DNA of 64,000 bases. Source: Haplodiscus bocki. Its lineage: Eukaryota. Location: assembly GCA_965655095.1 (NCBI GenBank), contig OZ296658.1:23622001-23686000 (forward strand), in the 5' to 3' direction. Below, in pieces: positions 8,820-48,200 of the stretch; position 1 is the first letter of the stretch; every line of letters begins with the position of its first letter. The notes beneath the pieces were generated by a model. That model saw only the letters and a list, made by a program, of their open reading frames with translations. It was not told the DNA's origin and made no database searches. A program made the position numbers and the translations under genes.

Positions 8820-9065
8820 CAAAGTTCTGTTCTACCCTTCTTTTCTCCTATCCTTCCTTTCCTCTACCCTTCTATTGTTCTATCCTTCTATTGTTCTGTC
8901 CTTCTATTGTTCTAACCTTCTTTTGTTCTACCCTTCTTCTGTTCTATCCTTCTATTGTTCTACCAAACTTTTGTTCTATCCGCCTATTGTTCTATCCTTC
9001 TATTGTTCACCCATTCTATTGTTTTAAACTTCTATAGTTTTATCCTTCTGTTGTTCAACTGCCTA
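8820..9065. repeat. Pyrimidine-rich minisatellite (unit like CCTTCTATTGTTCTA)
   Basis: Directly visible degenerate tandem units inside element 1. Confidence 0.8.
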
Positions 9066-21362: not shown

Positions 21363-22835
21363 CTAACCTCCCGGATGTGAATTCACCAACTCCGTAACGT
21401 CATAAACTTGTTCACGAATGATAATCCAGCAATCGTCCACCGTATCGTGCTGTCGAACTTCCTCTCGTGAATAAACTTTCTCTTTGCTTTTTATTTTTTT
21501 ATCCAGTTTGGGCAAAAACTGGGAATGGAAGGGATGTCGTTTTCGTTCATCCACTGGTCGGAGTTCTATTTCAATTTTCTTGTCCAAAATCTTGCGCCAT
21601 TTTTCCTCTTTTTTCATATCATTTTCGTAATCTGTTTGTGCTGAAATGTCGAACTTTTTCTCAGAAGGGGTTTCTCGTTTCTTGTATCCCCCAACAATTC
21701 TTTGGACTGTGTTGCTTTTGGCTTGAAGATTATGAACACCTTTTTTCTGAACCGGTAACACGTTTTCAAGAAAGTGGTTTTTCAGGGCTTGTTTGCTTTC
21801 ATGCAGATGTTCGCTTGATTGGATACTTTTACTAGTAATTTTATCGGACAAAATGTGACCCATTTCCTGGAACCCTGGGTACAGCAGAATTCTCTGGTTG
21901 TTTGGATGTTCTTTGATTAGTAAGTTGAAACAGGAGTTATCGTAAGGACAAGCTGGGTTCTTGGTTTTAGAAAGAGGTTGAGAGACCCAGTTTTGGTCTA
22001 TTGCCTTGATCGAAAGCTTGGTCGACTTTGGAATTAACCTTAGTTCCAAGGAAAACTTGAAATGGAAAAGTCGGGAATTTAATTCAAGATCACGGGTTCC
22101 TTTATGGCGCGCCGTTTCTTCAATGAAACAAGAGGTCCAATTTTGATGGTTATCGATGGAATATTCCACTGAAATTACCTTTTTTCCGAGTCCAGCAAAA
22201 GCCAAACCTTCCAGAACTACTTCGTCTCTGGCTCGTACTACGGTTCCGGTTTTTGGAACGGTTAAAAACGACATGATTGGGATTTCAACCGGAAAAGCAT
22301 TCCGGTTTTGGGTCAACTCAATGGCGAAAATTGACCCGTATCGGTCAGAGGTCAAATATCCGGGAATAATTAGTCTGAAAGGTCCTCCGGATTTTATATC
22401 TAAATTACGATTGTTGCATTTAAAAGCAAGCATTGCTCCTATGTTTGGATTCAGCAGCACTGAAAGAGGAATTTTCAAATGTTTTTCTTTATCGTCTTTG
22501 AAAATACTCGAATGGAATTCAACTGTTGTAATTTGTTCCTCGTTGATCTGGTATTTCGAGAACATTGTAGAAGTTTCTATTCCAGTGAACGTGGCCTGTG
22601 TGTACAAACTGCATTTTTCTGCACTGAACTTCTCGTCAACCAATAAGATGTCGCGATCAATGACGTCATCGAGCCACTCGAATCGGTCGAAGATCTGATC
22701 AGGAAAATCGATTCCGGAAATGAGAATGAAATCGTTGACTTTTGATAAAACATGTTCAGGGATATTTTGTTTGGGCATCATGTAAGCAGGAATTGGTGTT
22801 AGCTGTGTATAATGATCTTCACTTTCGTTTTCCAT
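21363..22835 (-). CDS. Sulfite-oxidase/nitrate-reductase-family Moco and dimerisation domains followed by a cytochrome b5 domain; divergent, probably continues in a downstream exon
   Basis: MLAFKCNNRNL...GGPFRLIIPGY, LEGLAFAGLGKKVISVEYSID..NW, KAIDQNWVSQP, then VYSREEVRQHDTVDDCWIIIREQVYDVTELVNSHPGG. The ORF ends at a donor-like GAG|GTTAGA inside the b5 domain. ATG at 22835. Confidence 0.75.
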   Translation of the reverse strand: MENESEDHYTQLTPIPAYMMPKQNIPEHVLSKVNDFILISGIDFPDQIFDRFEWLDDVIDRDILLVDEKFSAEKCSLYTQATFTGIETSTMFSKYQINEEQITTVEFHSSIFKDDKEKHLKIPLSVLLNPNIGAMLAFKCNNRNLDIKSGGPFRLIIPGYLTSDRYGSIFAIELTQNRNAFPVEIPIMSFLTVPKTGTVVRARDEVVLEGLAFAGLGKKVISVEYSIDNHQNWTSCFIEETARHKGTRDLELNSRLFHFKFSLELRLIPKSTKLSIKAIDQNWVSQPLSKTKNPACPYDNSCFNLLIKEHPNNQRILLYPGFQEMGHILSDKITSKSIQSSEHLHESKQALKNHFLENVLPVQKKGVHNLQAKSNTVQRIVGGYKKRETPSEKKFDISAQTDYENDMKKEEKWRKILDKKIEIELRPVDERKRHPFHSQFLPKLDKKIKSKEKVYSREEVRQHDTVDDCWIIIREQVYDVTELVNSHPGG

Positions 22836-23519
22836 TTTAGAACAGGTTTTCTTGTAGACAGAAAACAAAAACAAGACAACTACTTTTCAATACGAAATGA
22901 CTTTTTGTAGCTCTCTTTGAAAGTCTGTTCAGCTCAACTTATATGCTTTATAGTTTCAATCAATCGCGAGGCAAGCTTCAATTAAATTTGTTGATAAAGT
23001 TGTATGATTCTAAATTATAATTTGTTATTTTAGTCAGCCTTAGAGAGCTTTTAGCAAAGTATTGCTTGATCAAGTTACGTCAGTTTTATTTTTTTAAAAA
23101 CTCGTGTAACCATTTATCGAAAGTATACTGAATAATTTTCTGGCATGAAAGACTAGTAATAACTAATAACTTTCATCATAACGCAGCCAAAACATTTTTT
23201 AGTGTATTGACTATTTGCTTCATAGGCATAACTGAATATTATTTTCAGTAGTTTTAGATTTCTTTTGATATTCCTTATTTGAAGTGACTTCTGCTCAGGA
23301 AATCAAGCCAAATCGCTTCAAATTTGATTTATTGATTACCAAACAGTCACGGTGCATCAATGCCTTTTTCCAATTTGATGAAAACAGTTAGTGTTTATTC
23401 CAATTTTGATCACCTGTTTTTTCTTGAATTTTCATTTTGAATTTTTTCGCCAATTCAACATCATTTCGCTTCCTGTTAAAAAACAAATCCAAAAAACTTT
23501 TGTGGTCGTTTTTCCTCAA

Positions 23520-31600: not shown

Positions 31601-31605
31601 GACTT

Positions 31606-33197
31606 TGTGACGTGTGTGGTGTGGTGTTTTCATATTCTTTTTCTGCTCGAGTGGCTTGCTTTTATTGTATTGAATGGTGGTGGCTGAATTTTATTCTTTC
31701 TTAACTATACGTCTTAAATAATCCACTCTATGGTGTTTGGCAGAACCGTAAGACGTTCGGTTCACAACCATGCAAATCTTCCGTACTGCAGAGCTTCCAG
31801 GTTCTACTTGGTTCGGGTCAATATGCTACGCTGGTACCTTACCGTCACTTAGCCCACCGCACGGTATAGAGTGAATTTGGTTTGGAATACTATCAACTCT
31901 ATGCAAACGAGTTGTTTCTTAATTCTAAATTTTATAATCTCGATTAATGGTGGTGGTGGTTCTGACTTTCTATCTTCTCAAATTTTAACAAGCTCTGAAC
32001 AAATTTCATCTTTCTTTAATTTTCTTTCGAATGCGTGTTTCAGGTTCTCGTCACTTAAATGGTTTTGTTAGTAGTAAGTCTGGGATTACTCTACTACTAT
32101 TGAGTTGAAAAAGTAGTTTTAACTACTTTGGGGTTACAAAAATTTTGATCTGTTTAGAGCTTGCTATGGTAAAAGTGAAAGAAATGAGATTATGAAGTTG
32201 ATTGAATTGATTTTTCGTTAAGCTTTGACAAAATTGTAGTTTACAATGAATGAAATCTAATATATCTCAAAGAACAGAACTCACGACATTATGGTTTGAA
32301 TGTTGGTGTGGTTGATCGATGGTTGGAGGTCGTCTATGCAGTCTTCGTGGGGCAGTCTTTGGATATTTGTGATTTGATCGTAGGATTTGTTCAAGAGAGA
32401 TTCGAAAATTTATGAAATTGAAAAGAATACAAAATTTAGCAAGAAAAGTTGAACGTCGAACGTTCAATAAAATTTTTGAAGACGTCTAACGTCAAAGAGT
32501 TTTTCAAAATTGCAAAAGTCAAAAAGAACGAGCAGCTGAGTTTTGAAAAGTGGGGTTCTAAAGGCAGAGTTTTGCGAGTCCGCCTTTTATAGTTTTTGTC
32601 ATGCTCAACTGTGACCAGTAATATTTTGCTGGTCATTGTCTGGTGCATGATCAGCCTTTCATGCTTCAAGGTTTTACTATTTTTGGGGTATCTGTCAAGG
32701 AATCATCCCCCAAAAGTTACTATTATTATTTCAACTGTTCTAAGTTTGAAGCATTGACGAAATTTTGTTTCTTCGCTTCAAGAAAATAATTCTTGATCGA
32801 AAGCAGTTGGGAGTTACTATTTCTATAAGTAACTAAAATTTGATGGCTACTGAATTTAAGCATCTGATGACATTCGTTGTTGAGTTGGCGGCCAATTTTG
32901 CTGACGTACATTGATTTGAATTTTGGCGGTCGTCTCCACAACAGAGGCTGTTTCGTCAGGAGAATAAATTTAGATAGTCTTCTGGTGTGGTGAGATTGTG
33001 CCATCAATAGCGACGTGATCAAATATTTTATATGAAGCACCGGATAAGTGAGTTCTTTAATTATAAAAAGCATCGATTGAGTGGTTAAAATATGCGCGTT
33101 TAAGATTCAAGCTAAGTCATGTTTAAGTTTAACGTTGTTTCAATTCTTCATTCTTTTCAGCATTCTTTCATATATTATGACTTATGGCATTGTCATA
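31606..33197 (-). repeat. 3' LTR of element 2
   Basis: Direct repeat of 44273-45864 (offset 12667); termini TATGAC...GTCACA on the element strand; AATAAA at 31666-31661. Confidence 0.97.
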
Positions 33198-33200
33198 ATG

Positions 33201-33211
33201 CCTTCCTTTTT
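33201..33211 (-). other. Polypurine tract
   Basis: AAAAAGGAAGG 3 nt upstream of the 3' LTR. Confidence 0.8.
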
Positions 33212-33230
33212 GTAGTTTGTGTCCCACAAA

Positions 33231-33591
33231 CTAGTGTTGTTGAATATGAAAGTCGCCCAAACAGTACGGTTGGCCTTTGGTGTACGCGTCCACCGCAGAA
33301 GGTCCACAACATTTGAGAATAGCTTGAGCGAGAGTGTCATCTGTAGCAACAGGTGGTGGATCAGTCTGCGTGGATTGATTGGCCATGCGGGGCGCACTAA
33401 TGAAGAGTTGTGATGGTGCGCGCAGGAAACTTCGATATGTTGTATGGTTTGTTCGTTTGAGGACGACCGGGCCAGGTGGAGAGGTGATTTTGAGGACCCG
33501 GTATTGATTGTTATCAAGGAGGTGAACCACATCACCTACGCGAACGTTGTGAGTTCGCCCATCACACGTTGTCAAGGGAGCAAAAGGAAGA
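33231..33591 (-). CDS. Accessory ORF4 (spliced; ~121 aa), beta-rich N-half plus STQTD motif
   Basis: T-rich tract then AG| acceptor at 33593-33592; 1 nt then in-frame LPFAPLTTCDGRTHNVRVGDVVHLLDNNQYRVLKI...NQSTQTD; ends just before the PPT. Confidence 0.65.
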
Positions 33592-33794
33592 CTAAAAAAA
33601 ATCAAAGGGAGACCCACAACGGTCTCGCAGGGAGGAAGCTGCTAAGCTTGCAAAAAGAGTTCGCAGATGAACTTCAGTGAGGAAGCTGCTAAGCTTACAA
33701 AAAGGGAGTTCACTAAGAACTACTGAATTGAAAAATGTAAAAGGTACAAAACAAGCGAATTAAGAACAGACGTGTTAGAAAGCGAGTACAAACG

Positions 33795-34221
33795 TTATTC
33801 TTCAGTTTGTAAATGTCTAATATTTTGTTGGGGGCGTCTTCGGGGTGAAGGACGGCGCTGGGCTGGCTGGCTGGTTGGAGTGGCTTGGGCAAGAGTACTA
33901 GGATGGATACGAGGTGCTTCTAATCGAAAATAGAGGTGGGGGTGCTGGCAAACGGGACACTTCTCGTACCCACGGGAAAGGAGAAAATTTAAGCAAGGGG
34001 GACAAGTATAATGCGGGATATGGTGATGGATGTGTAACGTAATGATCTTATGTACGGGGAAAGTTTTTAAACAAACGGGGCAGGAGCGATAAAGGGGGCC
34101 GAGAGGGCAGCGGGGATGAATGGGTGTATCGTCATATAGCGGGGCATTCATGGAGTCGGATGGGTCTTGCTGTCGGCGGACGAGGTAGTTTTGGTCGTTG
34201 TGGTAGGTTTTGAATGGTGCG
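33795..34221 (-). CDS. Accessory ORF3 (spliced; ~143 aa), RING-like zinc finger
   Basis: GTTTTTTATTTTAG| acceptor at 34223-34222; CPVC...TLH.....PHYTCPPC..........CPVC; Arg-rich C-terminus. Confidence 0.8.
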
Positions 34222-34381
34222 CTAAAATAAAAAACTATTGATACGTAAAAATTTATAAATGTGGTAATCTAAAAATCTAAAATGCTGAGTAAGATGAATG
34301 CAAAAGTGGTATAAAAGCAGTTCGTGTAAGTTTGAAACGAATGTTTGAAGGTTTAAAAGTTTTAGGTTCGCAAAATCAAAT

Positions 34382-34748
34382 TCAACCAGGGCGGCCATCA
34401 GCAGGGGGTGCGAGGACGGGTCTCACCCGTTCTTCTCTTTCAATAGCAGTTTTTCGAAAATTAATGGGGTCGCGGTATAACTTGAGGAGGGCACGGCGGA
34501 CAATTTGATATCGGACGCGATCCCAGCGATTGAGGTTGGGGAGTGAATCAGAGTGGTATAAAAAGAGAACAAATTCGTTCCATCGGGGGTCTTTATAGGG
34601 GAAGTGTACCGCAGTTTGGTCATTTAGGGTGAGTTGAATGGTGCCCTCCGGGAGGATCATCAAGTGGGTGATTGGGTAGCGTATGTCATTTAGCACACAC
34701 GCCCATGTAAAATCCAGGGAGACGGCCTGCCATGTGTGTGCATCGGCG
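34382..34748 (-). CDS. Accessory ORF2 (spliced; ~123 aa), unknown function
   Basis: CATTTTCTTTTAG| acceptor at 34750-34749; 1 nt then in-frame ADAHTWQAVSLDFTWACVLNDIRYPITH...; GC-rich island between AT-rich spacers. Confidence 0.7.
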
Positions 34749-34947
34749 CTAAAAGAAAATGATTACGAGGGACGCGGCTACGCATCACGAAGAGAGCTTT
34801 ACGCAAAAAGCTAGAACAAATTATAAAATATATTCGTGAGCAAGTGAAAGAGATATAAAAGATAGTGAACGGATTAATATAATGTAGTATTGAGTTTTAA
34901 CGAGTATTCGTGATTGTTTATTAAGTTGAACGAAAAGTTTATGTAGT

Positions 34948-35332
34948 CTAACGAAAGTTGAGTATGGAAGCCATTACGAAGGGATCGATGTAGGGGATGG
35001 GACGGGAACCACCACAAGAAGGACAGATTGGGTTGGTGAGGTAGTAGAGGGTGTAGGAGCACGGGTTGCAGACAGGAGTAGACTGGGGGTCAGTGAGGCA
35101 CTTGGGATTAAAGCAATGAGGAACGGCATAGTCGAGGTTACATTTTGTACAAATGGGAATACCAAGGGCCTGGAATGGGTCCACGGGGGCACGACAAGCG
35201 GGGCACATGTGGGTATTGTATTGGATAAGGTAACTGCAACAAGAGCGGCAGATTCGATGGGGCACGTTACTCGGGGCGTGGAGGGTGACAAGGGTATCAA
35301 CATCGCGCAGGCAAACGAAACACTGTTCAAGG
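34948..35332 (-). CDS. Accessory ORF1 (spliced; ~129 aa), RING-like zinc finger plus further Cys clusters
   Basis: CTAAT branch point, pyrimidine tract, TTTCAG| at 35334-35333. Extending to the acceptor completes the finger: CFVC...TLH.....PHRICRSC..........CPAC, then CTKC..HC....C and CNPC...CPSC. Confidence 0.8.
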
Positions 35333-35480
35333 CTGAAATGGACGGAAGGACGGATTAGAAGGGGGGCACGCTAGTGCCACACAGAGGCTCCGAAGAGGCG
35401 TTTACTTTTGGATACTTACTTATTTTACATGGTGAACTTTGTACATTTAAGCACTGTTATACATTACTTGGGGACGACAC

Positions 35481-37857
35481 TTAAGCTGATGTAGTTTGGG
35501 TAGTGTCGACGTGAGGTACCGGAGCTGGAGTGAAGGTGGTCAGAACCAACGGAGGTGTTGTACGAATGGTTCTGGTTGGTGCGGTGACGTCCGGGTACAG
35601 TTTTTCTTCATCTTCGGCGGAGTAAGGAAACGGTGCGTTAGCTTCAGTTTTCAGTAAAGCTTCCTTAGCAAGAGCACGGAGTGCAGTAAATTCATCACGA
35701 GTCAAAATTAAAAATGAAGAGTCTGAGTCTGGTTGGATGTCGTTCGTGACATGAATAAATTGGCCAGATTTATTCTTGAAGAAACGACGTGGGGCACAGC
35801 AAAGTGCACGTGCCTGTCTGTGAAAGAGTGGAAAGTTAAGTAAAAACAAAAATAAAGAAAGTGCGATTGATCCGCCTGCGATTAAGAATGAAGTCTTCGC
35901 TGGTACAAATTTGTCAAGTGCTGCTTCTGTTGCAGGATTGAGAGACGTATAGTGTGCTACAATTGGTTCGGTCAATTTTTGCAAAGTTTCAGGATCCATT
36001 CGTCTAACATCTGGAATTTCAGTCAGTTCCAACTGTACGCTCTCAAGAATTGATTTCCGGGCGGCACCGATTGAGTAACTTGGAAAATTGAGTCGATCGA
36101 AAGGGACATTTTGAAAAACTTGATTCAAAGGTGGTGCCAGTTTGATTGTTGCAATATACGGTTCCGGAGTTGTTTTACATGCGTCCATATCAGGTGACAG
36201 GACAAGATCGCCTTGATTAATATAAATGGTACTCTCACAACTCGGTCGAAGTACACAAGCCTGACAATCAATGGTGGACAAACTGAGTCCGTTGCGGCTA
36301 TCGTTCTTAATGTCCATTGTGGGGTTGCGAGAAATGAGGTGGTAAACGCCATTTGCCAGGTAGATCGCCTGTGGGGCTTCCGGGAGAAGGACAGAGGAAA
36401 CGGGGCAATTTCGGAGTGCTGGTATGTCTTGATTAAAATACAACGACGTCAAACAGAGAAGCGTTTCATCAGTAGTAGTCGAAAAGCCTTTGCGGCACAG
36501 TTTGATTCGATTACTGCCCGTGCATTGTTGTAGCGTAGACGCGGCTAACTCTGCAAAATTCGTATTGTCTGTTGCAATCGCGACGTAGGGTTTCGGGAAT
36601 TGGTAAACTGATGCCGTCTTGCCGTCGTCATTGGGCTGATACAGAGGTTCCGCTTGAAAGACATTGTACGTAGCGGACTTAGAGTTCATCGGGATGCCAA
36701 GTACAAAAGAGATGCCTTTAGGTAACATTGTGACTTCTAGTACGATTTGCAATTCGTAATAGATAGCTTCGAATCCCGATGGTATAGCAGGTGTCAGTTT
36801 GCTACCTTTCCGAAATTCTTCAGCGGCTAATTCTTGTACTATTGTGGCAAGTTGAGTGGGGAGTAGGAATTGTGGTGTGATATGTCCAGTAGCGAGAGAT
36901 GAGATGATTGAAAAGAAATTGTTTCTATACGCGTAAAATGCTGCACGAAAAGCTTTGAAATGAGTGTACAAAGTGCCGATTTGTGATAAATACAGTTGTG
37001 AAGACTGGAGAAAGTGGCGGTACGCACTTTCAAATTGGTAGCAACGGAACGCATCTTCCAGAGTGTATACACGTGCAAGCATATAAGAAATATGTTCGTA
37101 AGTGTCGTCTTTAATGCGTTCAACACTTTCTTGGGTCAGACGAATTTCGTCTCGGAGTAAAGCAAGTTTTTCGTTGTTTTGATCTTGGACGGTCTGAAAT
37201 GCCTGTTGTTGTGTCTTTTGTTGTTTGGTTACTTGATCGAGTTCTCGTTCTAAGTCTTCAGTAGAGTCGCAAAGATTGAAAATGGAGAGTGCGCTACATG
37301 CTGCATCTTTGATCGGTTCGCCTAAGATGAATCCAGTGCCAGCGGCAAGTGCTGCGACAGCACCAATGAGTCGTCGTGTTCTGTTGTGAGGCGCTTCTTC
37401 ATCGATAGAGCGTCTTTGTCGAGGGGCTCCGAGAGACTCGACTGGTGGGAAGAATGATTCCGCGATATCGCTCAAAGTATGAAGTTCGGATTGGGCTTCA
37501 TTAATTTCGGTTGTAAGATGGTTGTACATGTTTTCCATTTGTTGTATAACCGGTATGTGAGATTCATTGAACGTGTTGTTTTTGCATCCTGCCCGTGCTA
37601 CGCGGTATTGCATGCGTGAGAGCTTTGTCTTGCTTTCGAGGATAACAGCATGCACGCCGTCGATATTGAGATCCGGGAGCGTCGGAAAAGGAGAGAACAG
37701 TCGAATTTGACTCTCGCTTTCTGAAGTCACAACTTGATATTTAAAAATGAAAGCGGCTCCTCGTTCAAATTCCGGTAGTTGTTGGTTGTTGACAGTCGAA
37801 TATTGTATGGTGTTTGCAATGAGAAGTGTTGTCCAGATGAAAATTGGCGTTGGGATC
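35481..37857 (-). CDS. env: Envelope glycoprotein, class I F-like fusion protein (spliced; ~793 aa)
   Basis: Acceptor TCTCCTTTTAG| at 37859-37858 precedes a signal-peptide-like IPTPIFIWTTLLIANTIQYS; furin-type sites RQRR and RTRR; fusion peptide LIGAVAALAAGTGFILG; heptad repeat; Cys-rich region; TM FLIAGGSIALSLFLFLLNFPLF. Confidence 0.9.
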
Positions 37858-37874
37858 CTAAAAGGAGACCTTCG

Positions 37875-40800
37875 TTATTTCTGATGATAAGTTTTGCGTT
37901 GTCTTGCAGGAGTTTTACTAAATTTCGTTCCTGACTGTTTTTGTTGTTTTCGCTCTGGAGAGTTATAACTTTTAACTATATCAGGAAGATATGCCGTAAA
38001 AAGCGGTTCTGCTTTTCTTTGTGAGGACGTGTTAGGTCGTAGTTGCATGTTAGACGTGTTTGCAGGAGGTGTTCTCCTAAGACTTCTAGCTGCGGCGTCC
38101 ACAATTTCCGTGACGTTGTCAACTGATAATTGACTTTCGTGGAGAAAGACATTCTCAGGTATAAGAGGTTGTATGTCAGTTTGAGGAGTAACCGGTGGTT
38201 GTATCGCAACGTCATTTCTGGTGTGTGGACTTGGGGGTTCTCGTGTTGGTGATGGCGAGAACACAGGAGGTGATCTCGTTACTTCACGTCTTGTCGGTAC
38301 GGGCGAAATAAGTGGCGAAATTCTACTTGGTGTAGTTGATGCAGTTGTTCGTTCTACGGTAGGTGTTGGTGTGAAAATACTAGAAGATGCAGGCAGAAAA
38401 CTAAGACAATCATCGTGATTAAGTGTTCCATCTATATATTTGCGTGCGTCTGTTAGGTTTTGAGTTGACTGAAAACTTCTTGGTTTATTTCTTGTAGGTA
38501 CATTGGACGTTGGCGGAGGTTCGAAAAATGGTTTCAATCTATCATAGTGTACAATTTGTTGTTTTGCAGAGTTTTCTTCTTTAATTCTGAATGTGACATC
38601 GTTCAAACATTTTTCAATGATATATGGTCCTTTCCAAGGACTTGCGAACTTAGAAGTTGTTCCTACAGCAATGACTGGATGATAAAGTAAAACTTTTTGT
38701 CCTTCTTTGTATGTTGGACCGTGAACCTTTTTGTTATAGATAGCATTTCGGCGTTTTTGTTTTTCATTCAAATTACGTCGGACTAACTCAAATGCTCGTT
38801 GGAATGCGCGTTGTTTGTTGTGCACAAATTCATGAATGTCTGTAGTTACATTTTCTTGTGGGTTAGGATACATGCAATCTAAAGGTAAACTCAACTCTTG
38901 TCCAAAAACTAGGAACTGCGGTGTATATCCTGTTGATTCATGTACCGAAGATCGATATGCCATCATTACGTAAGGCAGTTGTTGTGACCAGTTGCTTTGT
39001 TCTTCATTAATACATTTTGCTAACATGTTTTGTAAAGTTTTATTCATTCTCTCGATCACCGCATTTGACTGAGGATGAAAAGGTGTTGTGCGAGTTTTGT
39101 CCATTTCAAGAAGTTGCATTAATTGTTCAAAAAGTTTTGATTCGAAATTTCGGCCTTGATCACTATGAAGGCTGTGCGGACAACCAAAGCGACTGATCCA
39201 ATGATCAACTAATGCGTTTGCTGTTGTGGTAGCTGTTTGATCTGGTAATGGTATTGCTTCGTACCATTTTGTGAAGTGATCGCCAATTACTAAGATGTGT
39301 TTATTTCCATTTGACATTGGCAAAGGTCCCATAAAGTCAATTCCAATGTGATGAAAAGGATAACTGGCTTGCCATTCTACTAAAGCGTGATGATATTTCT
39401 TGGGTGGTCCCGAACGTTTTTGACATTCCGGGCACCGACTGACAAACAATTTTGTGTCTTCCTGCTGTCCTGGCCAGTAGAATCTTTGTTTTATTTTCTC
39501 TGAGGTTTTAGCAACTCCTAAGTGTCCGGCTGTTGGTGATGAATGACATGCTGATAGAATTTCTTGTGTCATTGACGGTGGTACTATTTGTTGCAATACC
39601 ACTTGGTTATCTGCGGTTTCGAATTTCCTGCACAAAATTCCATCGATGAGTTGTAAACTTTTCAGTTGGTTGTTAAGTTGCCATGCTAGCCTAGGAAGTC
39701 CTTGCAATTCTTGTGAGGTGGGCACTTTTCCCTTTTCAATCCATTCAATCAATTTAGACAATGCCTCATTTTGTCGTTGCGCTTGTCCTAACGCAGAGTG
39801 AACTGGTGTTTCTGTCTGTTTTCGTGATTGTTCATCTTTATTTCGATCATAGACTGTGATTGTGAGGTTCGACTGTGCACAAATTTCTCTGATAAGACGT
39901 TCAACTTTGTACCATTCTAATCGATCAAGTCCACAACCGGCTTTTGGCATACTAATTTCAGTGACTTTATGTTCATTTGCGTGCTTCGTCATTGCCTCTA
40001 GTGATTGTCGCAAACTATCGTACGTTGGTTTTTGAAAATAGCGGTTTTTTGTAACTAGGTGGTAGATGAAACGTTCGTCTACTTGTTGGACAAAAAGGGG
40101 AGAGTTCGTACTCTCAGGAAAATTGTACGGGAACTTGCGTTTGAAACTTCGGGCAATTCCCGCGGACATTTTAAAGTCTGATGATATGCAATGTGCTAGT
40201 GAGTCTTCTGAGTCAAAAAGATTACCATTTTTATGAATGAGTTCGAAAAATTTTGTTTTCACTGGTTTATCTATGTTTTCTTTGCTTTGAGAACTAGTAA
40301 CTTGATTTACAATGGGGATTCGTGAAAGTCCGTCGGCGTGACCAATACTTTTGCCGGGTCTGTGTTGCACTTCATAATCAAATGCCGCTAACTTTTCGAG
40401 CCATCGTGCTGTTAATCCATCTGGATCTTTAAAGTTATGCAACCACTGCAATGCACGATGATCAGTCACAATTTTGAATTTCCTCCCGAGCAGATAATGT
40501 TTAAAGTGTCGAGTAAAAGTTACAATTGCTAAAAGTTCTCGTTTTGTCGCAGAATAGTTTGTTTGAGATTTTGAAAATGCCTTAGATGCGTAGCAAATAG
40601 CTCGCTCTTTACCGTCTTGCACTTGGGCTAATACTGCTCCCATTGCTGTTAGACTTGCGTCAGTGTACAAAATGAATGGTTCTTTTACGTCCGGAAAGGC
40701 TAAGATTGGTGTAGAAGACAAGTGTTTCTTTAAATTTTCAAACGCTTCTTGCGTTTCTTCTGTCCAAGTAAAAGAACTCTTAATTTCACTAGCTTTATGC

Positions 40801-42554
40801 AATGGTCGGGCTATCATAGCGAAGTTTTTGATATACCGTCTGTAATATGAACAAAGTCCCAAAAACGACTTGACATCTGTTTGATTTTGTGGTACTGGAA
40901 AGTTTTGAACTGCTTTGACTTTTTCGGGATCGGCTTCCAATCCATTTTTGCTGATTACATGTCCTAAGAACTGAACTTTTGTTTGGAAAAAGGCGCATTT
41001 TGTCGGATTGATTTTTAGATTCGCCTCACGAAATCTTTGGAAAACTTGTTGCAGTCTTTTAATGTGCTCCTCTGGAGTTTTTGAAAAGATGATACAATCA
41101 TCTAAATAAGGTACTGTAATGTTCCACGTGAGTCCAACAAGCACGTGTTCCATTAGACTTTGAAATGTGTTCGGACTTCCCGTTAGTCCCATTGGCATGC
41201 GTAGCCATTTAAATGATCCGAAAGGAGTACTAAACGCTGTATAATTTTGGCTTTTGGGTTCCATTGGTAGCTGATAAAATCCCCAAGACATATCTATTGT
41301 TGTGAAATAAGCACTTCCTTGAAGTGTATCGAAAATTTCCTCTATTGACGGTATCGGCCAGCAAGACTTGATTGTTTGTTCATTCAGTTTTCTATAGTCT
41401 ATTACTAATCGTAGTTTTCCATTCTTTTTTGGAACTAGCATCGCTGGTGCACTATATGGACTATGACATGGTGTAATCAACTCTTTGTTCATGAAGGCAT
41501 CTATTTTCTCTTTTAAATCATCTTTGTAATGCACTGGCATTCTTCTATTCGGTAATTTTATTGGTTGTGAGCCTGGCTTCACATCTATTCTATGACTAGT
41601 TGCATCGCATTTTCCGAGGTCCCATTGATTGATTGAAAAGATATCACTATAGTCATCTATTAAATTTCTAAAATCTGCCCTGCAGTTATTGTTTATTTCT
41701 TTGCTAATTGCTTTCTTTACATTCTCCAAGTCGTACTTGGGATCTACTTCATTATAATTTTTCTTTTGTTTCTGATTTATTTCTTGTATCAGACGATCTG
41801 ATACCAGTTGGGACGATCCCAATGTTGTATCTTTGTAAATTGTTAAAACTTCATCATTTGTATTTGCTACTGTGATAGGAACTATTCCTTTTTCAAAACT
41901 AAACAAAGCATCTTGTGCTATTTGAGTTTCATTATTTATGAAGCGCTCGTGCGGTTCAAACAAAGCGACTCTCGCTACTGGTGGCGCTTTCCAACCAGGA
42001 ATTGTGCCGGGCACAATCATAACATGTTGTGGTGGTATTGAGACTTTCTCTAATGCCACGACTCTATAAACTTGTTTTTCGTCGAACGAAAACTGTTTTC
42101 TGTAAAGAGGGACCAGTACATTTTTATCAATTTTCAATTTGCCTTCAGAAAATAGTGCATCACATTTATTTGCTTCAAGAAAATCAAGTCCCAGTAAACA
42201 ATCTGATGCTGCTTCTATTAAGACGTAAAATGTATGCTCGTACGTTTTGGGACCTATTTTGATTGGTACGGATACTGTGCCTTTAATTTGAATGGGCATC
42301 TGATTTGCGCTGCTGAGTCTTGTTGTACTTGGCTGTATTTTGACTTGATGATTTTCATTGATTTGATTGAAAAGTTTTTCACTAAGACATGACACGCTCG
42401 CTCCACTATCGCAAACGGCTTCGACCTGTTTGTTCAAAATTGAAATCTGTACATACAAACTTCGATGATCCACAACGGAATTAAGAAGCTGAGTAAGTGG
42501 GCCTTCATTAGTGTCGTCTACGTGTTGACCCCGGGACGTAGACTGGTCTAGTTT
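37875..42554 (-). CDS. pol: Pol polyprotein PR-RT-RNase H-macrodomain-integrase, reached by -1 frameshift from gag
   Basis: DSGA protease, YLDD RT, YTDAS/RELLAI RNase H, HHCC plus IDF/SDQG/ERMN integrase, GPY motif. The frame is open from the slippery site; the listed 1532-aa ORF starts at 42473. Confidence 0.97.
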   Translation of the reverse strand, partial: KLDQSTSRGQHVDDTNEGPLTQLLNSVVDHRSLYVQISILNKQVEAVCDSGASVSCLSEKLFNQINENHQVKIQPSTTRLSSANQMPIQIKGTVSVPIKIGPKTYEHTFYVLIEAASDCLLGLDFLEANKCDALFSEGKLKIDKNVLVPLYRKQFSFDEKQVYRVVALEKVSIPPQHVMIVPGTIPGWKAPPVARVALFEPHERFINNETQIAQDALFSFEKGIVPITVANTNDEVLTIYKDTTLGSSQLVSDRLIQEINQKQKKNYNEVDPKYDLENVKKAISKEINNNCRADFRNLIDDYSDIFSINQWDLGKCDATSHRIDVKPGSQPIKLPNRRMPVHYKDDLKEKIDAFMNKELITPCHSPYSAPAMLVPKKNGKLRLVIDYRKLNEQTIKSCWPIPSIEEIFDTLQGSAYFTTIDMSWGFYQLPMEPKSQNYTAFSTPFGSFKWLRMPMGLTGSPNTFQSLMEHVLVGLTWNITVPYLDDCIIFSKTPEEHIKRLQQVFQRFREANLKINPTKCAFFQTKVQFLGHVISKNGLEADPEKVKAVQNFPVPQNQTDVKSFLGLCSYYRRYIKNFAMIARPLHKASEIKSSFTWTEETQEAFENLKKHLSSTPILAFPDVKEPFILYTDASLTAMGAVLAQVQDGKERAICYASKAFSKSQTNYSATKRELLAIVTFTRHFKHYLLGRKFKIVTDHRALQWLHNFKDPDGLTARWLEKLAAFDYEVQHRPGKSIGHADGLSRIPIVNQVTSSQSKENIDKPVKTKFFELIHKNGNLFDSEDSLAHCISSDFKMSAGIARSFKRKFPYNFPESTNSPLFVQQVDERFIYHLVTKNRYFQKPTYDSLRQSLEAMTKHANEHKVTEISMPKAGCGLDRLEWYKVERLIREICAQSNLTITVYDRNKDEQSRKQTETPVHSALGQAQRQNEALSKLIEWIEKGKVPTSQELQGLPRLAWQLNNQLKSLQLIDGILCRKFETADNQVVLQQIVPPSMTQEILSACHSSPTAGHLGVAKTSEKIKQRFYWPGQQEDTKLFVSRCPECQKRSGPPKKYHHALVEWQASYPFHHIGIDFMGPLPMSNGNKHILVIGDHFTKWYEAIPLPDQTATTTANALVDHWISRFGCPHSLHSDQGRNFESKLFEQLMQLLEMDKTRTTPFHPQSNAVIERMNKTLQNMLAKCINEEQSNWSQQLPYVMMAYRSSVHESTGYTPQFLVFGQELSLPLDCMYPNPQENVTTDIHEFVHNKQRAFQRAFELVRRNLNEKQKRRNAIYNKKVHGPTYKEGQKVLLYHPVIAVGTTSKFASPWKGPYIIEKCLNDVTFRIKEENSAKQQIVHYDRLKPFFEPPPTSNVPTRNKPRSFQSTQNLTDARKYIDGTLNHDDCLSFLPASSSIFTPTPTVERTTASTTPSRISPLISPVPTRREVTRSPPVFSPSPTREPPSPHTRNDVAIQPPVTPQTDIQPLIPENVFLHESQLSVDNVTEIVDAAARSLRRTPPANTSNMQLRPNTSSQRKAEPLFTAYLPDIVKSYNSPERKQQKQSGTKFSKTPARQRKTYHQK
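39849..40250 (-). other. TARG1/OARD1-like macrodomain within Pol
   Basis: NGNLFDSEDSLAHCISSDFKMSAGIARSFKRKF...IYHLVTK....KPTYDSLRQSL...ISMPKAGCGLDRLEW.KV..LI. Confidence 0.9.
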
Positions 42555-42557
42555 AAA
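42499..42557 (-). promoter_or_regulatory. -1 ribosomal frameshift signal
   Basis: U UUA AAC directly before the gag UAG, 7-nt spacer, 8-bp stem GTCTACGT/ACGTAGAC; pol is in the -1 frame. Confidence 0.85.
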
Positions 42558-43840
42558 GTATTTTGTTGCTGCGAGGAATTTGCGTTGCGGTCTTGATTGT
42601 AGTTTCGTGAATTTTGGTTGAAATTCGAATTTTGCTGCCTATTGTTTTGGTTTTGTCGTGGTGCTCTACATTCACGAGACATATGTCCCAGTCTTCCGCA
42701 ATTAAAACAAGCTTGACAATCCCTGGATTGGTGATTTGTTCTGTTACAATGCCTGCATGGTTGTTGATTTGTGTTGTTTCTGTTTTGTTGCTGATTTGGT
42801 GTATTGCGATTGTTGTTATATCTGTTGTCTTGTTGATTGCCACTGTTGTTGTATCTATTGTTTTGATTGTTATTGTTATATCGGTTGCTATTGTTGTTTG
42901 AATTTCTATAATTTGGATTTTGATTTGTACTTGCACTTTGTCTATGTGGTCCGGGACTATTAAAACGAACGGAGCGACCGTCGGTACTACTTGAACGTGA
43001 ACTCGAAGAGTTTTGATTTGTTTGTGGTAGAGCTTTTTGAATTTCTTGTCGGATTGTCTGTATTAATGTTCCCATCATATCGTCTTGTGAGGTGGATGTT
43101 GTTGCCATCAATGGTTGCGGGGGAGTGGCTGAAACCATGTTTACTGTGGCCTGGGATCCACTTCTAAGACTGGGATCCATTTCCATGAACGCATGTAGTT
43201 CGACTGCGAGGGCTAGAGCAGCATCCGGACTGGCTGGTTTACTCTTTCGAAGTTCCCATCTCAGCTGGGGATCATGAAGTCCTTCGATGAAACTAGTGAG
43301 AACCATTTGTTCTTCGATGAGGGGTTGTCCCCTATAAACTCTTCTAGCAAGTGTTCGAATATCACAAAGAAACGCGGCGATAGTTTGGTTTGGTTGCTGC
43401 CGCGCAGCTTTCAGTTTTGCTTTAAGAACTTCAACATTTGTAGTGTACGTGGTTCGAAAAGCTGCTACTAATTGATCAAAATTCTGTTGTTGTGCTACGG
43501 TTAAGGTTGTGTAAAAATGCAAGGCGTTTCCTTTGAGTCTTAATGCAAAATAGTTCGGTCTGTTATCAGTGGTGGCCGTGTGCCATCCTGAAAGTGTTGC
43601 GGCTGTTGTGAATTGTTGTAAGTAATCTTCAAAATCTCCTTCGCCGGTGAAAGCTTCTGGCATTAAACACGACGGGAGGGCCGAAAAAACTGCGCCGGCG
43701 GTGGCCGTCGACGTACTTGGTGTGGTCGGCGTGAGAGGGGTGAGAGAAACGGAACCGCCGCCGCCTGATCCGGATCCAGGTCCGCCGCCACCACCGCTTC
43801 GTGGTGATCCGCTTCTTGATGGGGGGGTTGACGACGCCAT
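42548..43840 (-). CDS. gag: Gag (430 aa)
   Basis: LKGNALHFY capsid-like region, two CCHC knuckles (CRHCNRTNHQSRDC, CFNCGRLGHMSREC), Asn/Gln-rich flanks. Confidence 0.95.
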   Translation of the reverse strand: MASSTPPSRSGSPRSGGGGGPGSGSGGGGSVSLTPLTPTTPSTSTATAGAVFSALPSCLMPEAFTGEGDFEDYLQQFTTAATLSGWHTATTDNRPNYFALRLKGNALHFYTTLTVAQQQNFDQLVAAFRTTYTTNVEVLKAKLKAARQQPNQTIAAFLCDIRTLARRVYRGQPLIEEQMVLTSFIEGLHDPQLRWELRKSKPASPDAALALAVELHAFMEMDPSLRSGSQATVNMVSATPPQPLMATTSTSQDDMMGTLIQTIRQEIQKALPQTNQNSSSSRSSSTDGRSVRFNSPGPHRQSASTNQNPNYRNSNNNSNRYNNNNQNNRYNNSGNQQDNRYNNNRNTPNQQQNRNNTNQQPCRHCNRTNHQSRDCQACFNCGRLGHMSRECRAPRQNQNNRQQNSNFNQNSRNYNQDRNANSSQQQNTLN

Positions 43841-44250
43841 TTTTGAACAAAAGCGTTCTTAGATCTTATTGAGTTTTAACCGAACAAAACAAAAAAACAC
43901 TGTTTTAGAGTTTTAAAGTTTTAAAGAAAAAGAAAATCAAAAAAACTGTTAAGAAAAAAACACACTTAAAGTTGTGATAAACACGCAGTGTCTTAAAATT
44001 TTGTTCAATCAACTTCTTTTTCTTTTATTAGCCAGCTCTTCTCAAGAGCGAAACAAGTAGTTTTAATTTTAAGTTGAGTTGAGAGCGACCGTTCGCGAAA
44101 GCAACCGTTCGAGAAAGCAACCGTTCGAGGAAGAGCAACCGTTCGTGGTTAATGTTTTATCACTTACCTTGTACTGGCAACTGAAAACTTTAAGATTTAA
44201 GTTTTACGTTTTACAAAAAAAACCCAAAAACAAAAGAAGGAGAAAGTCAG

Positions 44251-44268
44251 ATCCCACCCTTGTCACCA
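44251..44268 (-). other. Primer-binding site
   Basis: TGGTGACAAGGGTGGGAT, 4 nt inside the 5' LTR boundary; complementary to a tRNA 3' end ...ATCCCACCCTTGTCACCA (Ser/Leu-like; identity not established). Confidence 0.85.
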
Positions 44269-44945
44269 TTTTTGTGACGTGTGTGGTGTGGTGTTTTCAT
44301 ATTCTTTTTCTGCTCGAGTGGCTTGCTTTTATTGTATTGAATGGTGGTGGCTGAATTTTATTCTTTCTTAACTATACGTCTTAAATAATCCACTCTATGG
44401 TGTTTGGCAGAACCGTAAGACGTTCGGTTCACAACCATGCAAATCTTCCGTACTGCAGAGCTTCCAGGTTCTACTTGGTTCGGGTCAATATGCTACGCTG
44501 GTACCTTACCGTCACTTAGCCCACCGCACGGTATAGAGTGAATTTGGTTTGGAATACTATCAACTCTATGCAAACGAGTTGTTTCTTAATTCTAAATTTT
44601 ATAATCTCGATTAATGGTGGTGGTGGTTCTGACTTTCTATCTTCTCAAATTTTAACAAGCTCTGAACAAATTTCATCTTTCTTTAATTTTCTTTCGAATG
44701 CGTGTTTCAGGTTCTCGTCACTTAAATGGTTTTGTTAGTAGTAAGTCTGGGATTACTCTACTACTATTGAGTTGAAAAAGTAGTTTTAACTACTTTGGGG
44801 TTACAAAAATTTTGATCTGTTTAGAGCTTGCTATGGTAAAAGTGAAAGAAATGAGATTATGAAGTTGATTGAATTGATTTTTCGTTAAGCTTTGACAAAA
44901 TTGTAGTTTACAATGAATGAAATCTAATATATCTCAAAGAACAGA

Positions 44946-44956
44946 ACTCACGACAT
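44946..44956 (-). promoter_or_regulatory. Putative shared leader: start codon plus splice donor ATG-TC|GTGAGT
   Basis: First ATG downstream of the TATA box, A at -3, consensus donor in phase 2 matching all five downstream acceptors. Confidence 0.75.
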
Positions 44957-45250
44957 TATGGTTTGAATGTTGGTGTGGTTGATCGATGGTTGGAGGTCGT
45001 CTATGCAGTCTTCGTGGGGCAGTCTTTGGATATTTGTGATTTGATCGTAGGATTTGTTCAAGAGAGATTCGAAAATTTATGAAATTGAAAAGAATACAAA
45101 ATTTAGCAAGAAAAGTTGAACGTCGAACGTTCAATAAAATTTTTGAAGACGTCTAACGTCAAAGAGTTTTTCAAAATTGCAAAAGTCAAAAAGAACGAGC
45201 AGCTGAGTTTTGAAAAGTGGGGTTCTAAAGGCAGAGTTTTGCGAGTCCGC

Positions 45251-45258
45251 CTTTTATA
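45251..45258 (-). promoter_or_regulatory. TATA box of the element 2 LTR
   Basis: TATAAAAG on the element strand, implying a start site near 45225. Confidence 0.65.
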
Positions 45259-48200
45259 GTTTTTGTCATGCTCAACTGTGACCAGTAATATTTTGCTGGT
45301 CATTGTCTGGTGCATGATCAGCCTTTCATGCTTCAAGGTTTTACTATTTTTGGGGTATCTGTCAAGGAATCATCCCCCAAAAGTTACTATTATTATTTCA
45401 ACTGTTCTAAGTTTGAAGCATTGACGAAATTTTGTTTCTTCGCTTCAAGAAAATAATTCTTGATCGAAAGCAGTTGGGAGTTACTATTTCTATAAGTAAC
45501 TAAAATTTGATGGCTACTGAATTTAAGCATCTGATGACATTCGTTGTTGAGTTGGCGGCCAATTTTGCTGACGTACATTGATTTGAATTTTGGCGGTCGT
45601 CTCCACAACAGAGGCTGTTTCGTCAGGAGAATAAATTTAGATAGTCTTCTGGTGTGGTGAGATTGTGCCATCAATAGCGACGTGATCAAATATTTTATAT
45701 GAAGCACCGGATAAGTGAGTTCTTTAATTATAAAAAGCATCGATTGAGTGGTTAAAATATGCGCGTTTAAGATTCAAGCTAAGTCATGTTTAAGTTTAAC
45801 GTTGTTTCAATTCTTCATTCTTTTCAGCATTCTTTCATATATTATGACTTATGGCATTGTCATAACTTAATAGCCACCATTTCCACCAGCAATCGTAATG
45901 CATTTGATAAATCGTCTTATCATGGATTTCAAGTGTTTTTCTGGTTACCGGCAAAATAAACTCAATGGCGAAAAAATAACAATCTCTAAAAGAAATCACA
46001 CGAAGCCTCTTTTGTTGAAATGTTGTGTTAATGCATGTCTTGTACCAAATTGAAATGACTGTGTTTTTCTATATTTGAATGGATAAACATTGATGTATTG
46101 TTTTTCAGCGACATAAATTTTTCAGCGAGATCTCGAAAGTTTTGCTGATGTTCTGTAAAATTGTTTTTGCAGAGCTAGTCTTACTCAGAGTTTAATTTTT
46201 TTTATTTTTCTGATTTTGAAGATTCCCAACTATTTTGTTGCGTTTTTTCATCAAAGGTTAGAAAGCAACTGAGTTGTTACTACAAGTATTTTTTTCCATT
46301 GTTCTCCACAAAAAGCAGTTGGAAGAATTTATGAACCAGAAGTTGAAGATTATCTATCCTGTGTAAGGGTCTCGGAGAAAATCAGCGCTAAACAGCGGTG
46401 GTTCACACGTTTGACGTTTTTCAGCGCTGTTTTGTGCTGATGTAGAAAACCTTAGAATCACCACCGTTAATCAGAGTTGTTTCAAACCCAATCAGCCCTG
46501 TTTTTTAATGAATCAAAAATGTTTAGCGCTCGCTAAAGGTGGGTTGCATATTGAAAAAAAACTGCTTTTAAAGTCTTGGGGAAATATCATGATCATCTAA
46601 TGAAAAATTCTATAGAATGTCCCAGTTGCAGAAAGACTTTTTCCGTTAAAAATTGTCGAAGGTTATAATTCAGTGATTCTAATTCTGACAACACATAGTT
46701 CTCAGTGAACGCAATTACGGTGAGTGAAATATGTCTGTCGAAGAACTTGGTTGCAAAAATCTGTTTTGTTTGACTTTCGTGCGATCAGAGCATCTGTCCA
46801 GAGGACTTGCATGAATAGGAATGCGCGTAACCGTCGGCCACTAAAGAACCGAAAAGACTCTGACCAAAGAATTAGCTCACATTTCGTTTTTTTTTTTTCA
46901 ATAGTTTTCCTAAGTAACAGTTCTCACTGCACGTTGCTCCGTGAGATACTTGCTTGCTCCCTGTAAACTTATCCTATGTCAAAGACTCACTGGATAATTA
47001 AACCACATATTTTACATGGTAATGCGTGCTGTACATCGAACTGTGAACAGCAGCCATCCCAATTCGGAGCCGTTTAACGCATGACAAGACTGTAATAAAA
47101 AAATACAAAGCTGGGAAAATGAGTTAAGTAACAGATATTCAATCTTTGATTATTTTCTGTCTTTTTCTCACCGTACCCGGGTCGAAGTTTTGGTTGCAAA
47201 TTTTCCGGCATAAGAGTTTGAATTGCGGTCAAAATTAGCTACAAAACTACTATTTATCTGAAACAAAAAAATCTAAGGAAAATTAAAATACATTCAAAAC
47301 AGAACTCTATATTGTTTTTGAAAAAGAAATTTTTACGTGCTCAAACTTGTTATACTTTTTGGCTGGTTGTTGCTAACACCGAAAGCCCACACTTTTGAGG
47401 AGCATATGCTCTGAAAGCTTCGGAACACTTTGTTCATAGAATTTTTTTGAAAAATTTCGAATGGCAATAGTCTTTAGATTCTTCTCGTAGACCTTTATTG
47501 CCAGCAAGCAAAGTAACCATTTTTTATTGTTTAGAGTTCTTTTTTTTAAAAAAAGCCCACGTAGGAATTGTTTCTCTCAGCGTTCATTTTTGATCTCATG
47601 TTGATATCAAAAAACTAGTAGAAAAAGTTAACTTAATTGGAGGAAGCAAAAGAATTTAGGGAGGTTAATGTATACATTATTCACATCCAACAGGGATGCA
47701 AAAAGAACGTAACCGCCCGTTTACTTTGCAACCTTCTACAGTTGAACAACTACGAGTTAACAGAATTGGTTCATGACTACTTCTCTCTTTACGACTATCA
47801 TATTTTGTACGAGTAAACCAGCAGTGGGATTTGACATAACCGACGAACACATATTTTTTTGTTTTGAAATGATTTTTTTTTCGACGGGACAGCTATAATA
47901 GGCAGTTGCAGTTTTGTTCAAAACAGACTCAGAGTTTCCAAGACATTTCTTTTTCTTGGAAAGAGGCAAGATTCTACATTTTTACTCAAATCAGTTGCTT
48001 CTAACATTTTTTTCTCAACGATGCACTTTGAACGTCAAACGTACAAACCAGAAGACGTCAAGGACGATTTGTCAGAATTTCTCATTTTTTCATATCTTTA
48101 GCAGGTAAAAGGAATAAGAGCAGTTGCTTTTTACCGGATTTGATGCGCCCATACTGTTTGTTTCTCTCTCTCTCTCACACTGCTTTTAATTGTCAAAAAC

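Follow-up and report, generated by a model that had tools for sequence, protein, structure and literature searches.

A gypsy-type retroelement with env and four accessory genes that are probably expressed by splicing from a shared start codon in the LTR

The minus strand of a 64,000-nucleotide stretch of Haplodiscus bocki DNA (GCA_965655095.1, contig OZ296658.1, positions 23,622,001 to 23,686,000; hereafter, the window) contains an intact, very young gypsy/errantivirus-like element that carries env and four conserved extra genes. Env and each of the four ORFs open at a predicted splice acceptor in the same phase as a start codon–bearing splice donor in the LTR. The element therefore probably expresses these genes as complex retroviruses do, although splicing is inferred here from sequence alone. 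The element is 14,262 bp long and is flanked by LTRs of 1,595 bp without a single mismatch; the window contains no N. Its features, all on the minus strand and numbered from the first letter of the window, are as follows.

31604–45865 (−), whole LTR element; gag, pol, and env are each uninterrupted (0 internal stops or frameshifts)
44271–45865 (−), 5′ LTR, 1,595 bp, 100% identical to the 3′ LTR
31604–33198 (−), 3′ LTR, carrying the same TATA, leader ATG, and donor (donor G at 32284), and AATAAA at 31695 and 31666
45251–45258 (−), TATAAAAG, putative promoter TATA box
44952–45225 (−), putative leader exon (5′ end inferred), with no ATG before its last five bases, ATGTC
44946–44956 (−), leader start codon plus donor, ATGTC/GTGAGT (the slash marks the predicted exon end); unspliced, it reads ATG TCG TGA, a two-codon uORF
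44162–44167 (−), rival donor CAAG/GTAAGT, between the primer-binding site and gag, with no ATG-initiated frame running into it
44251–44268 (−), primer-binding-site-like stretch beginning TGG, two bases after the 5′ LTR, inferred from position only
44084–44145 (−), tandem array in the 5′ UTR, 16-nt unit, 3.8 copies
42548–43840 (−), gag, 430 amino acids (Retrotrans_gag plus CCHC knuckles), with its own ATG
42551–42557 (−), T TTA AAC slippery heptamer directly before the gag stop (function inferred)
37875–42638 (−), pol frame: protease, RT, RNase H, a weak Macro-like stretch, and integrase (H2C2, rve, p58_C); the frame is −1 and overlaps gag by 91 nt
35481–37859 (−), env acceptor (AG 37859–37858) and env exon, 791 codons, in the same frame as pol after a single stop
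34948–35334 (−), ORF1 acceptor (AG 35334–35333) and ORF1, 127 codons, with a RING-like domain starting at codon 4, followed by further Cys pairs
34382–34750 (−), ORF2 acceptor (AG 34750–34749) and ORF2, 121 codons, no known family
33795–34223 (−), ORF3 acceptor (AG 34223–34222) and ORF3, 141 codons, with a RING-like domain (codons 47 to 94) paralogous to that of ORF1
33231–33593 (−), ORF4 acceptor (AG 33593–33592) and ORF4, 119 codons, no known family
33201–33211 (−), polypurine tract just upstream of the 3′ LTR, assigned by position

The initial annotation stated that env and the four downstream ORFs lack an ATG at their starts, that each begins at a pyrimidine-tract AG followed by one nucleotide and the open frame, and that the first ATG after the TATA box of the LTR lies at a consensus donor in the complementary phase. 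Reexamination of the sequence confirmed these observations in full. The positions 37858, 35333, 34749, 34222, and 33592 are each the G of an AG; the next base is G, C, C, C, and T, respectively, followed by open frames of 791, 127, 121, 141, and 119 codons. None has an ATG in the 5 to 17 open codons upstream, and the first internal Met is at codon 82, 42, 30, 24, and 69. Internal Met starts would remove the env signal sequence and the first Cys pair of the ORF1 RING-like domain. ORF3, however, has its ATG at codon 24, upstream of its RING-like domain, and could start there. On the donor side, the first ATG on the minus strand after the TATA box is at 44956, inside the LTR, in ...ATAATGTC/GTGAGT. 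Only three distinct GTRAGT hexamers exist on the sense strand, and one of them sits two bases after this ATG.

To estimate how unusual the acceptors are, we ranked all 758 AGs in the element with a crude polypyrimidine-AG score, which was devised after the sites had been seen. The AGs at 34749, 34222, and 33592 rank 1 to 3, that at 35333 ranks 10, and the env acceptor at 37858, which scores only moderately, ranks 107. None of the 486 AGs in the gag-pol-env coding sequence reaches the top score, and in flanking DNA such sites occur about once per 4 kb per strand. Each ORF-start window holds only two to four AGs, and the best-scoring one is always the phase-2 one. Shuffles of the 2.28-kb accessory region gave four or more ORFs of at least 110 codons in 1.25% of trials.

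ATG density falls from 17 per 607 nt upstream of the TATA box to 5 per 1,410 nt downstream. This depletion, which begins at the TATA box, supports a start site upstream of the leader ATG. The start site nevertheless remains inferred, and a second TATAAA at 44603 would put the leader ATG in U3.

Profile searches placed the element among Ty3/gypsy elements, probably of errantivirus type. The Pfam order in pol is protease, RVT_1, RT_RNaseH_2, Integrase_H2C2, rve, and Integrase_p58_C, and gag has Retrotrans_gag and CCHC. The putative class I, F-type env of the window hits no Pfam family by itself; 2 of 17 aligned relatives match Baculo_F (best 3.4e-8), and the profile weakly matches a solved “fusion protein” (E = 3e-4). 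A hydrophobic N terminus is present, and a furin-type site, a fusion peptide, and a C-terminal membrane anchor are visible in the alignment.

The accessory ORFs, each searched separately as an exon, are conserved genes. ORF1, ORF2, and ORF4 have relatives down to 64%, about 28%, and 50% identity, and homology starts at the junction. The Cys/His columns of ORF1 are invariant in seven relatives; ORF1 matches zf-RING_4 at E = 2.5e-4 and 21.2 bits, below the 27-bit cutoff, and weakly resembles the NOT4 and RNF125 RINGs (E = 0.14 to 0.18). ORF3 codons 47 to 94 align to the RING-like domain of ORF1 (35% identity, E = 6e-10 in a four-sequence database). No Pfam or PDB sequence matched ORF2 or ORF4. 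The predicted ORF2 structure has four strands and three helices (pLDDT 69.5) but no significant fold match (best E = 0.024), and the ORF4 model is too poor to be informative (pLDDT 53).

Conservation of the junctions was examined at the protein level. The Phe-Ser (TTY AGY) read across the acceptors is kept in most relatives that extend that far: 7 of 7 for ORF1, 8 of 9 for ORF4, 6 of 9 for ORF2, and 2 of 2 for ORF3; in three of nine ORF2 relatives, the junction residue is not Ser. Env relatives with an N-terminal Met begin within about two residues of the predicted spliced N terminus. Some relatives seem, however, to have start codons of their own: Most distant relatives of ORF4 have a Met shortly after the junction, and ORF1 relatives and one env lineage have a possible start upstream of it. 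Since the proteins in the collection searched are called from ATG, GTG, or TTG and always begin with M, their first residue does not prove an ATG.

The model that best accounts for these data, which we consider somewhat more likely than not, is as follows. Transcription would start just after the TATA box in the LTR. The unspliced RNA would serve as genome and as gag/gag-pol message, and on it the first AUG would be a harmless two-codon uORF. A fraction of the RNA would be spliced once, from the donor right after ATG-TC in the leader to one of the five acceptors, each supplying the third base of a Ser codon and then its own frame. The result would be a nested, 3′-coterminal set of mRNAs, each translated into a different protein beginning with Met-Ser, with acceptor choice deciding the product. 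The sites, their phases and strength, the reality of the genes, and protein-level conservation across the junctions are demonstrated by our analysis, while the start site, the use of this particular donor, the frameshift at the slippery heptamer, and splicing itself, including that of env, are inferred. The interpretation given in the initial annotation is thus supported in part, and its suggestion that the architecture has no precedent in Metaviridae is too strong, as discussed below.

Several alternative arrangements within the element were rejected. The possibility that ORF1 to ORF4 are exons of one gene was rejected, since donor-like sites at ORF ends are absent or in the wrong phase (34426 is phase 0) and 35419 lies after the env stop. 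Tandem duplication does not account for the shared phase: Only ORF1 and ORF3 are related, their RING-like domains sit 43 codons apart relative to the acceptor, and there is no DNA similarity between the units. A two-step leader, in which exon 1 is joined to the 13-nt mini-exon between an acceptor near 44183 and the donor at 44167, would put the frame in phase 0, which does not fit. No other copy of the element is present in the window, which contains only a distant, degenerate retroelement at about 3400–11530 on the plus strand; searches of the window revealed no Rfam hits and no tRNAs.

A less likely possibility is that the five acceptors are used with another 5′ partner, either the perfect donor at 44167 or, in a host that trans-splices, a spliced leader resolving a polycistronic RNA. 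Translation would then start at internal or non-AUG codons or at a codon supplied by the leader. The donor at 44167 occupies the classical retroviral position between the primer-binding site and gag, the 150- to 200-nt spacers ending in a U-rich tract plus AG resemble intercistronic regions, and ORF3, as well as ORF4 in its relatives, has Mets of its own. However, no ATG-initiated frame reaches 44167, all three frames being closed upstream of it. This scenario also leaves the ATG-less env and ORF1 unexplained and does not explain why all five acceptors share the phase that fits ATGTC/GT.

It is unlikely that the accessory genes are unspliced and transcribed from internal promoters in the AT-rich spacers, with translation from internal or non-AUG starts. 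Env is transcribed from an internal promoter in some Oikopleura Tor elements (PMC4402516), TATA-like motifs occur in the spacers, for example about 30 nt before the ORF3 acceptor, and an AATAAA lies 26 nt after the ORF1 stop. Yet AT-rich spacers yield TATA-like words by chance, and this view does not explain the top-ranked polypyrimidine-AG sites at the ORF starts, their shared phase, or their conservation. Least likely, env would be made by read-through of the single stop separating it from pol, with the accessory ORFs as decaying or nonfunctional passengers and the phase match due to chance; although pol and env share one frame, five relatives are continuous pol-env proteins, and the stretch upstream of ORF1 in the window has no start codon and contains one stop where relatives are called from a start, a fusion glycoprotein needs its signal sequence at the N terminus, the accessory ORFs are conserved over wide divergence with invariant Cys/His, and the combined chance of the site strength, position, and phase is very small.

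In its broadest form, a reading that we consider about as likely as not, an invertebrate errantivirus lineage has independently evolved a complex retrovirus-like expression program, in which a single start codon (Met-Ser) in the R region of the LTR is spliced to any of five acceptors, so that acceptor choice alone selects among Env and four accessory proteins. If so, genome complexity of the kind thought typical of lenti-, delta-, and spumaretroviruses, that is, several accessory genes served by one donor and alternative acceptors, also arose in Metaviridae. The family looks recently active, since the LTRs are identical and the gag and env clusters hold hundreds of members. Two RING-like accessory proteins in such a family are natural candidates for interaction with host factors and control pathways. 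The case also warns annotators that ATG-less ORFs downstream of env in LTR elements may be real genes.

Parts of this organization have precedents. MDG1-group elements (Drosophila 412 and Stalker2), which are insect Metaviridae, encode small accessory proteins, sORF1 and sORF2, that were shown to be expressed (PMC11952523); they lie upstream of gag (in some Lepidoptera, downstream of pol), have their own start codons, and are not reported to use a shared spliced start. In the Caenorhabditis elegans Ty3/gypsy element Cer1, the extra protein CERV, encoded downstream of pol, is made from a spliced mRNA (PMC10309623). CERV is, however, a single protein from a five-exon mRNA that shares exons with gag, and Cer1 has no env and no set of alternative acceptors. 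Oikopleura Tor elements are a Ty3/gypsy lineage with env, which in some members is spliced from an LTR transcript with the donor near the gag start (PMC4402516); other members use the internal env promoter, and no accessory cassette is described.

In complex retroviruses, one promoter and a major 5′ donor feed several alternative acceptors, giving nested 3′-coterminal mRNAs for env and accessory proteins. In deltaretroviruses, a start codon in an upstream exon is shared by products of a downstream exon. The resemblance is functional only: The pol and gag domains of the element are of Ty3/gypsy type (RT_RNaseH_2, Integrase_H2C2, and Retrotrans_gag), all proposed mRNAs are singly spliced, no regulator of RNA export or transcription was identified, and none of the accessory proteins resembles a retroviral one.

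Another of the closest known systems is that of Drosophila gypsy and other errantiviruses, which share the LTR-gag-pol(−1)-env layout; their env is of baculovirus F type and is expressed by splicing, as is inferred for the env described here. In D. melanogaster gypsy, the env start codon is itself formed by the splice, AT from the 5′ site and G from the 3′ site, which is the same phase as here (PMC2585583; env acceptor conservation in PMC13669377). In the element described here, four extra genes follow env, whereas a 2012 review states that accessory genes were not shown for errantiviruses (PMC3383448). The predicted 5′ exon carries a complete ATG plus two bases and lies in the LTR, 1.1 kb upstream of the gag ATG, not at the gag start. 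Because TCN is always Ser, the third base is free, and a shared ATG-TC leader would make any acceptor in the right phase productive, an economical extension of the gypsy device of building the env start codon across the splice.

The minus strand of the window carries a single LTR element of 14,262 bp, and the window contains no N. The two LTRs are 1,595 bp long and identical, so the insertion is very young. Neither gag, pol nor env contains internal stops or frameshifts. The main parts of the element are as follows:
31604-45865, minus strand: whole LTR element
44271-45865 and 31604-33198, minus strand: the two LTRs
42548-43840, minus strand: gag, 430 aa, with Retrotrans_gag and CCHC knuckles
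37875-42638, minus strand: pol frame, reading protease, RT, RNase H, a weak Macro-like stretch, and integrase
35481-37874, minus strand: frame following pol, containing env

Pol is in the −1 frame relative to gag and overlaps it by 91 nt, with a T TTA AAC heptamer located directly before the gag stop. The Macro-domain match (approximately 39850-40110, minus strand; pol residues 788-874) lies between RNase H and integrase and is weak (E 4e-4, below the cut-off). The same stretch is 36% identical to 3409-3663 on the plus strand, which is part of a second, degenerate retroelement (about 3400-11530, plus strand) whose pol pieces are 25-36% identical to the pol described here. An ORF of that second element, at 10957-11529, weakly matches Pfam Monjiviricetes_fusion (E 1.6e-5). 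A TGG-initiated primer-binding-like stretch follows the 5′ LTR of the intact element, and a polypurine tract precedes the 3′ LTR. Between the primer-binding-like stretch and gag, a 16-nt tandem repeat (44084-44145, minus strand; 3.8 copies) is found in the 5′ UTR, in a position that recalls the binding-site arrays of the gypsy 5′ UTR. A 115-codon ATG-initiated ORF lies entirely within the U3 part of the LTR (45393-45740, minus strand, equivalent to 32726-33073 in the 3′ LTR); it has no Pfam match, and its exact sequence is absent from the protein collection. Outside the element, a 503-codon ORF (21363-22874, minus strand) has Mo-co oxidoreductase, dimerisation, and C-terminal cytochrome-b5 domains, a nitrate-reductase-like order, and ends at HPGG, probably at an intron.

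The frame after pol, which is the same frame as pol and is separated from it by a single stop (37874-37877, minus strand), encodes a 791-residue protein with 117 relatives in the protein collection. All members of the alignment share a furin-type basic site, a fusion peptide, conserved cysteines, and a C-terminal membrane anchor. Two of 17 relatives match Pfam Baculo_F (best 3.4e-8), and the family profile weakly matches a solved “fusion protein.” We assign this protein, putatively, to the F-type env of errantiviruses, a type that a recent survey finds in insects, other arthropods, rotifers, tunicates, cnidarians, and ctenophores (PMC13524379).

The initial annotation had proposed that env and four downstream ORFs lack start codons of their own and open at splice acceptors sharing one phase with an ATG-bearing donor in the LTR. 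Every one of its statements about the sequence held. Each of the five proposed acceptor positions is the G of an AG:
37858, minus strand: env; next base G, then an open frame of 791 codons, first internal Met at codon 82
35333, minus strand: ORF1; next base C, then 127 codons, first internal Met at codon 42
34749, minus strand: ORF2; next base C, then 121 codons, first internal Met at codon 30
34222, minus strand: ORF3; next base C, then 141 codons, first internal Met at codon 24
33592, minus strand: ORF4; next base T, then 119 codons, first internal Met at codon 69

Upstream of these sites, each frame is open for only 5 to 17 codons, with no ATG in that stretch. The putative promoter TATA box TATAAAAG is located at 45258-45251, and the next ATG is at 44956 in ATGTC|GTGAGT. 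On unspliced RNA, this reads ATG TCG TGA, a two-codon uORF. Since TC followed by any base encodes Ser, all five joins would begin with Met-Ser.

To estimate whether this arrangement could have arisen by chance, we scored all 758 AGs of the element with a crude polypyrimidine-AG score. Each ORF-start window holds only two to four AGs, and in each of them the best-scoring AG is the phase-2 one, so little cherry-picking was possible. The ORF2, ORF3, and ORF4 sites rank 1 to 3, the ORF1 site ranks 10, and the env site ranks 107. Since the score was designed after the sites had been seen, these figures are indicative only. No AG in the 8.4 kb of gag-pol-env coding sequence reaches the top score, while in the flanking DNA such sites occur about once per 4 kb per strand. 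That three of them should each fall in a start window of about 60 nt, all in the same phase, is very unlikely by chance. Only three distinct GTRAGT hexamers exist on the sense strand (44951, 44167, and 35419), and one of them lies two bases after the first ATG of the putative transcript. The shared phase is not inherited by duplication: only ORF1 and ORF3 are related, and their RING-like domains sit at different distances from the acceptor.

The accessory ORFs are most likely genes. ORF1 has relatives at 64 to 79% identity with invariant Cys/His columns and contains a RING-like domain starting at codon 4. ORF3 has a paralogous RING-like domain at codons 47-94, as well as close relatives. We found 38 relatives of ORF4, down to 50% identity, and 34 cluster representatives of ORF2, down to about 28% identity. 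One relative joins an ORF2 N-terminal part to an ORF3 RING, so the adjacency of these two ORFs is conserved. Searches with ORF2 and ORF4 returned no known family or fold. In shuffles of the region, four ORFs of this size were obtained rarely (1.25%). Within the accessory region, the only AATAAA (34917-34922, minus strand) lies 26 nt after the ORF1 stop and could give a short transcript isoform, and a 30-nt direct repeat (93% identical, 47 nt apart) is present in the spacer between ORF3 and ORF4 (33640-33740, minus strand).

Conservation across the junctions was assessed from proteins only, with the exons searched separately. Proteins in the collection are called from the first ATG, GTG, or TTG and written with M; many therefore extend upstream of the acceptor and reveal its translation. 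The Phe-Ser pair (TTY AGY) read across the AG is kept in 7 of 7 relatives for ORF1, 8 of 9 for ORF4, 6 of 9 for ORF2, and 2 of 2 for ORF3. Sequence further upstream is poorly conserved and rich in residues encoded by pyrimidine tracts. For ORF2, homology begins at the junction, and no relative has a conserved Met there. For env, relatives that start with Met followed by a signal-like stretch begin within about two residues of the predicted spliced N terminus. One env relative of 48% identity (P0047) comes from a Logan assembly contig of 6,349 nt, about the size expected for a singly spliced env mRNA of such an element.

The model best supported by these data, which we consider somewhat more likely than not, has a single LTR promoter. 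Unspliced RNA would serve as the genome and as the gag/gag-pol message; some errantiviruses are reported to carry IRES elements (PMC3383448), which would help translation past the five upstream AUGs. Single splices would run from ATGTC|GT to one of the five acceptors, giving nested 3′-coterminal mRNAs, on each of which the leader AUG would be the first AUG and in frame with a different product. The sites, their phase and strength, the conservation of the ORFs, and the protein-level conservation across the junctions are seen in the data, whereas the transcription start, the use of this donor, and splicing itself are inferred from sequence alone. The interpretation offered in the initial annotation is partly supported. 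A second TATAAA at 44603 would leave the leader ATG in U3. Against that alternative, ATG density drops from 17 per 607 nt upstream of the first TATA to 5 per 1,410 nt between it and the gag ATG (shuffle mean 12.8, P = 0.005), a pattern that a long 5′ UTR starting there would show. This implies an R region of about 900 nt, because the AATAAA signals lie near the LTR end.

Several points complicate the model for individual genes. ORF3 could start at its own ATG. Most distant ORF4 relatives have a Met of their own shortly after the junction, which the closest subfamily of the ORF4 studied here lacks. ORF1 relatives are called from a start upstream of the junction; if that were the true start, the ORF1 in the window would be broken twice, having no start codon and one stop. 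One env lineage has a true in-frame Met upstream of the aligned junction.

A less likely possibility is that the same acceptors are joined to another donor or to a spliced leader. A perfect donor, CAAG|GTAAGT at 44167, sits in the classical retroviral position, but all frames are closed upstream of it, so it cannot supply a start codon. Together with a strong acceptor at 43946 (rank 4 of 758), this donor brackets part of the 5′ UTR upstream of gag, and a TTTTCAG acceptor lies 13 nt before it (within 44162-44190, minus strand), which may represent a leader intron or an alternative leader. Expression from internal promoters appears doubtful. Read-through combined with decaying passenger ORFs is very unlikely, although pol and env share a frame and five relatives (P0070, P0094, P0108, P0117, and P0132), one with only 47% env identity, are continuous pol C terminus plus env proteins.

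In the literature searched, which was not complete, we found no description of an errantivirus with several accessory genes sharing a leader start codon. A 2012 review states that accessory genes had not been shown for errantiviruses (PMC3383448), and the 2026 survey of env-carrying elements does not discuss splicing or accessory genes. Spliced or accessory proteins exist elsewhere in Metaviridae, namely, Cer1 CERV (PMC10309623) and MDG1 sORF1/2 (PMC11952523), while Tor env can use an internal promoter (PMC4402516). Env acceptors are conserved among errantiviruses (PMC13669377). In D. melanogaster gypsy, the env start codon is itself produced by the splice, with AT coming from the 5′ site and G from the 3′ site, which is the same phase as here (PMC2585583, citing the original 1994 work). 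Making a start codon available to env through splicing in this phase is therefore already known from gypsy; what would be new, if the model holds, is a complete leader start codon shared between env and several accessory genes.
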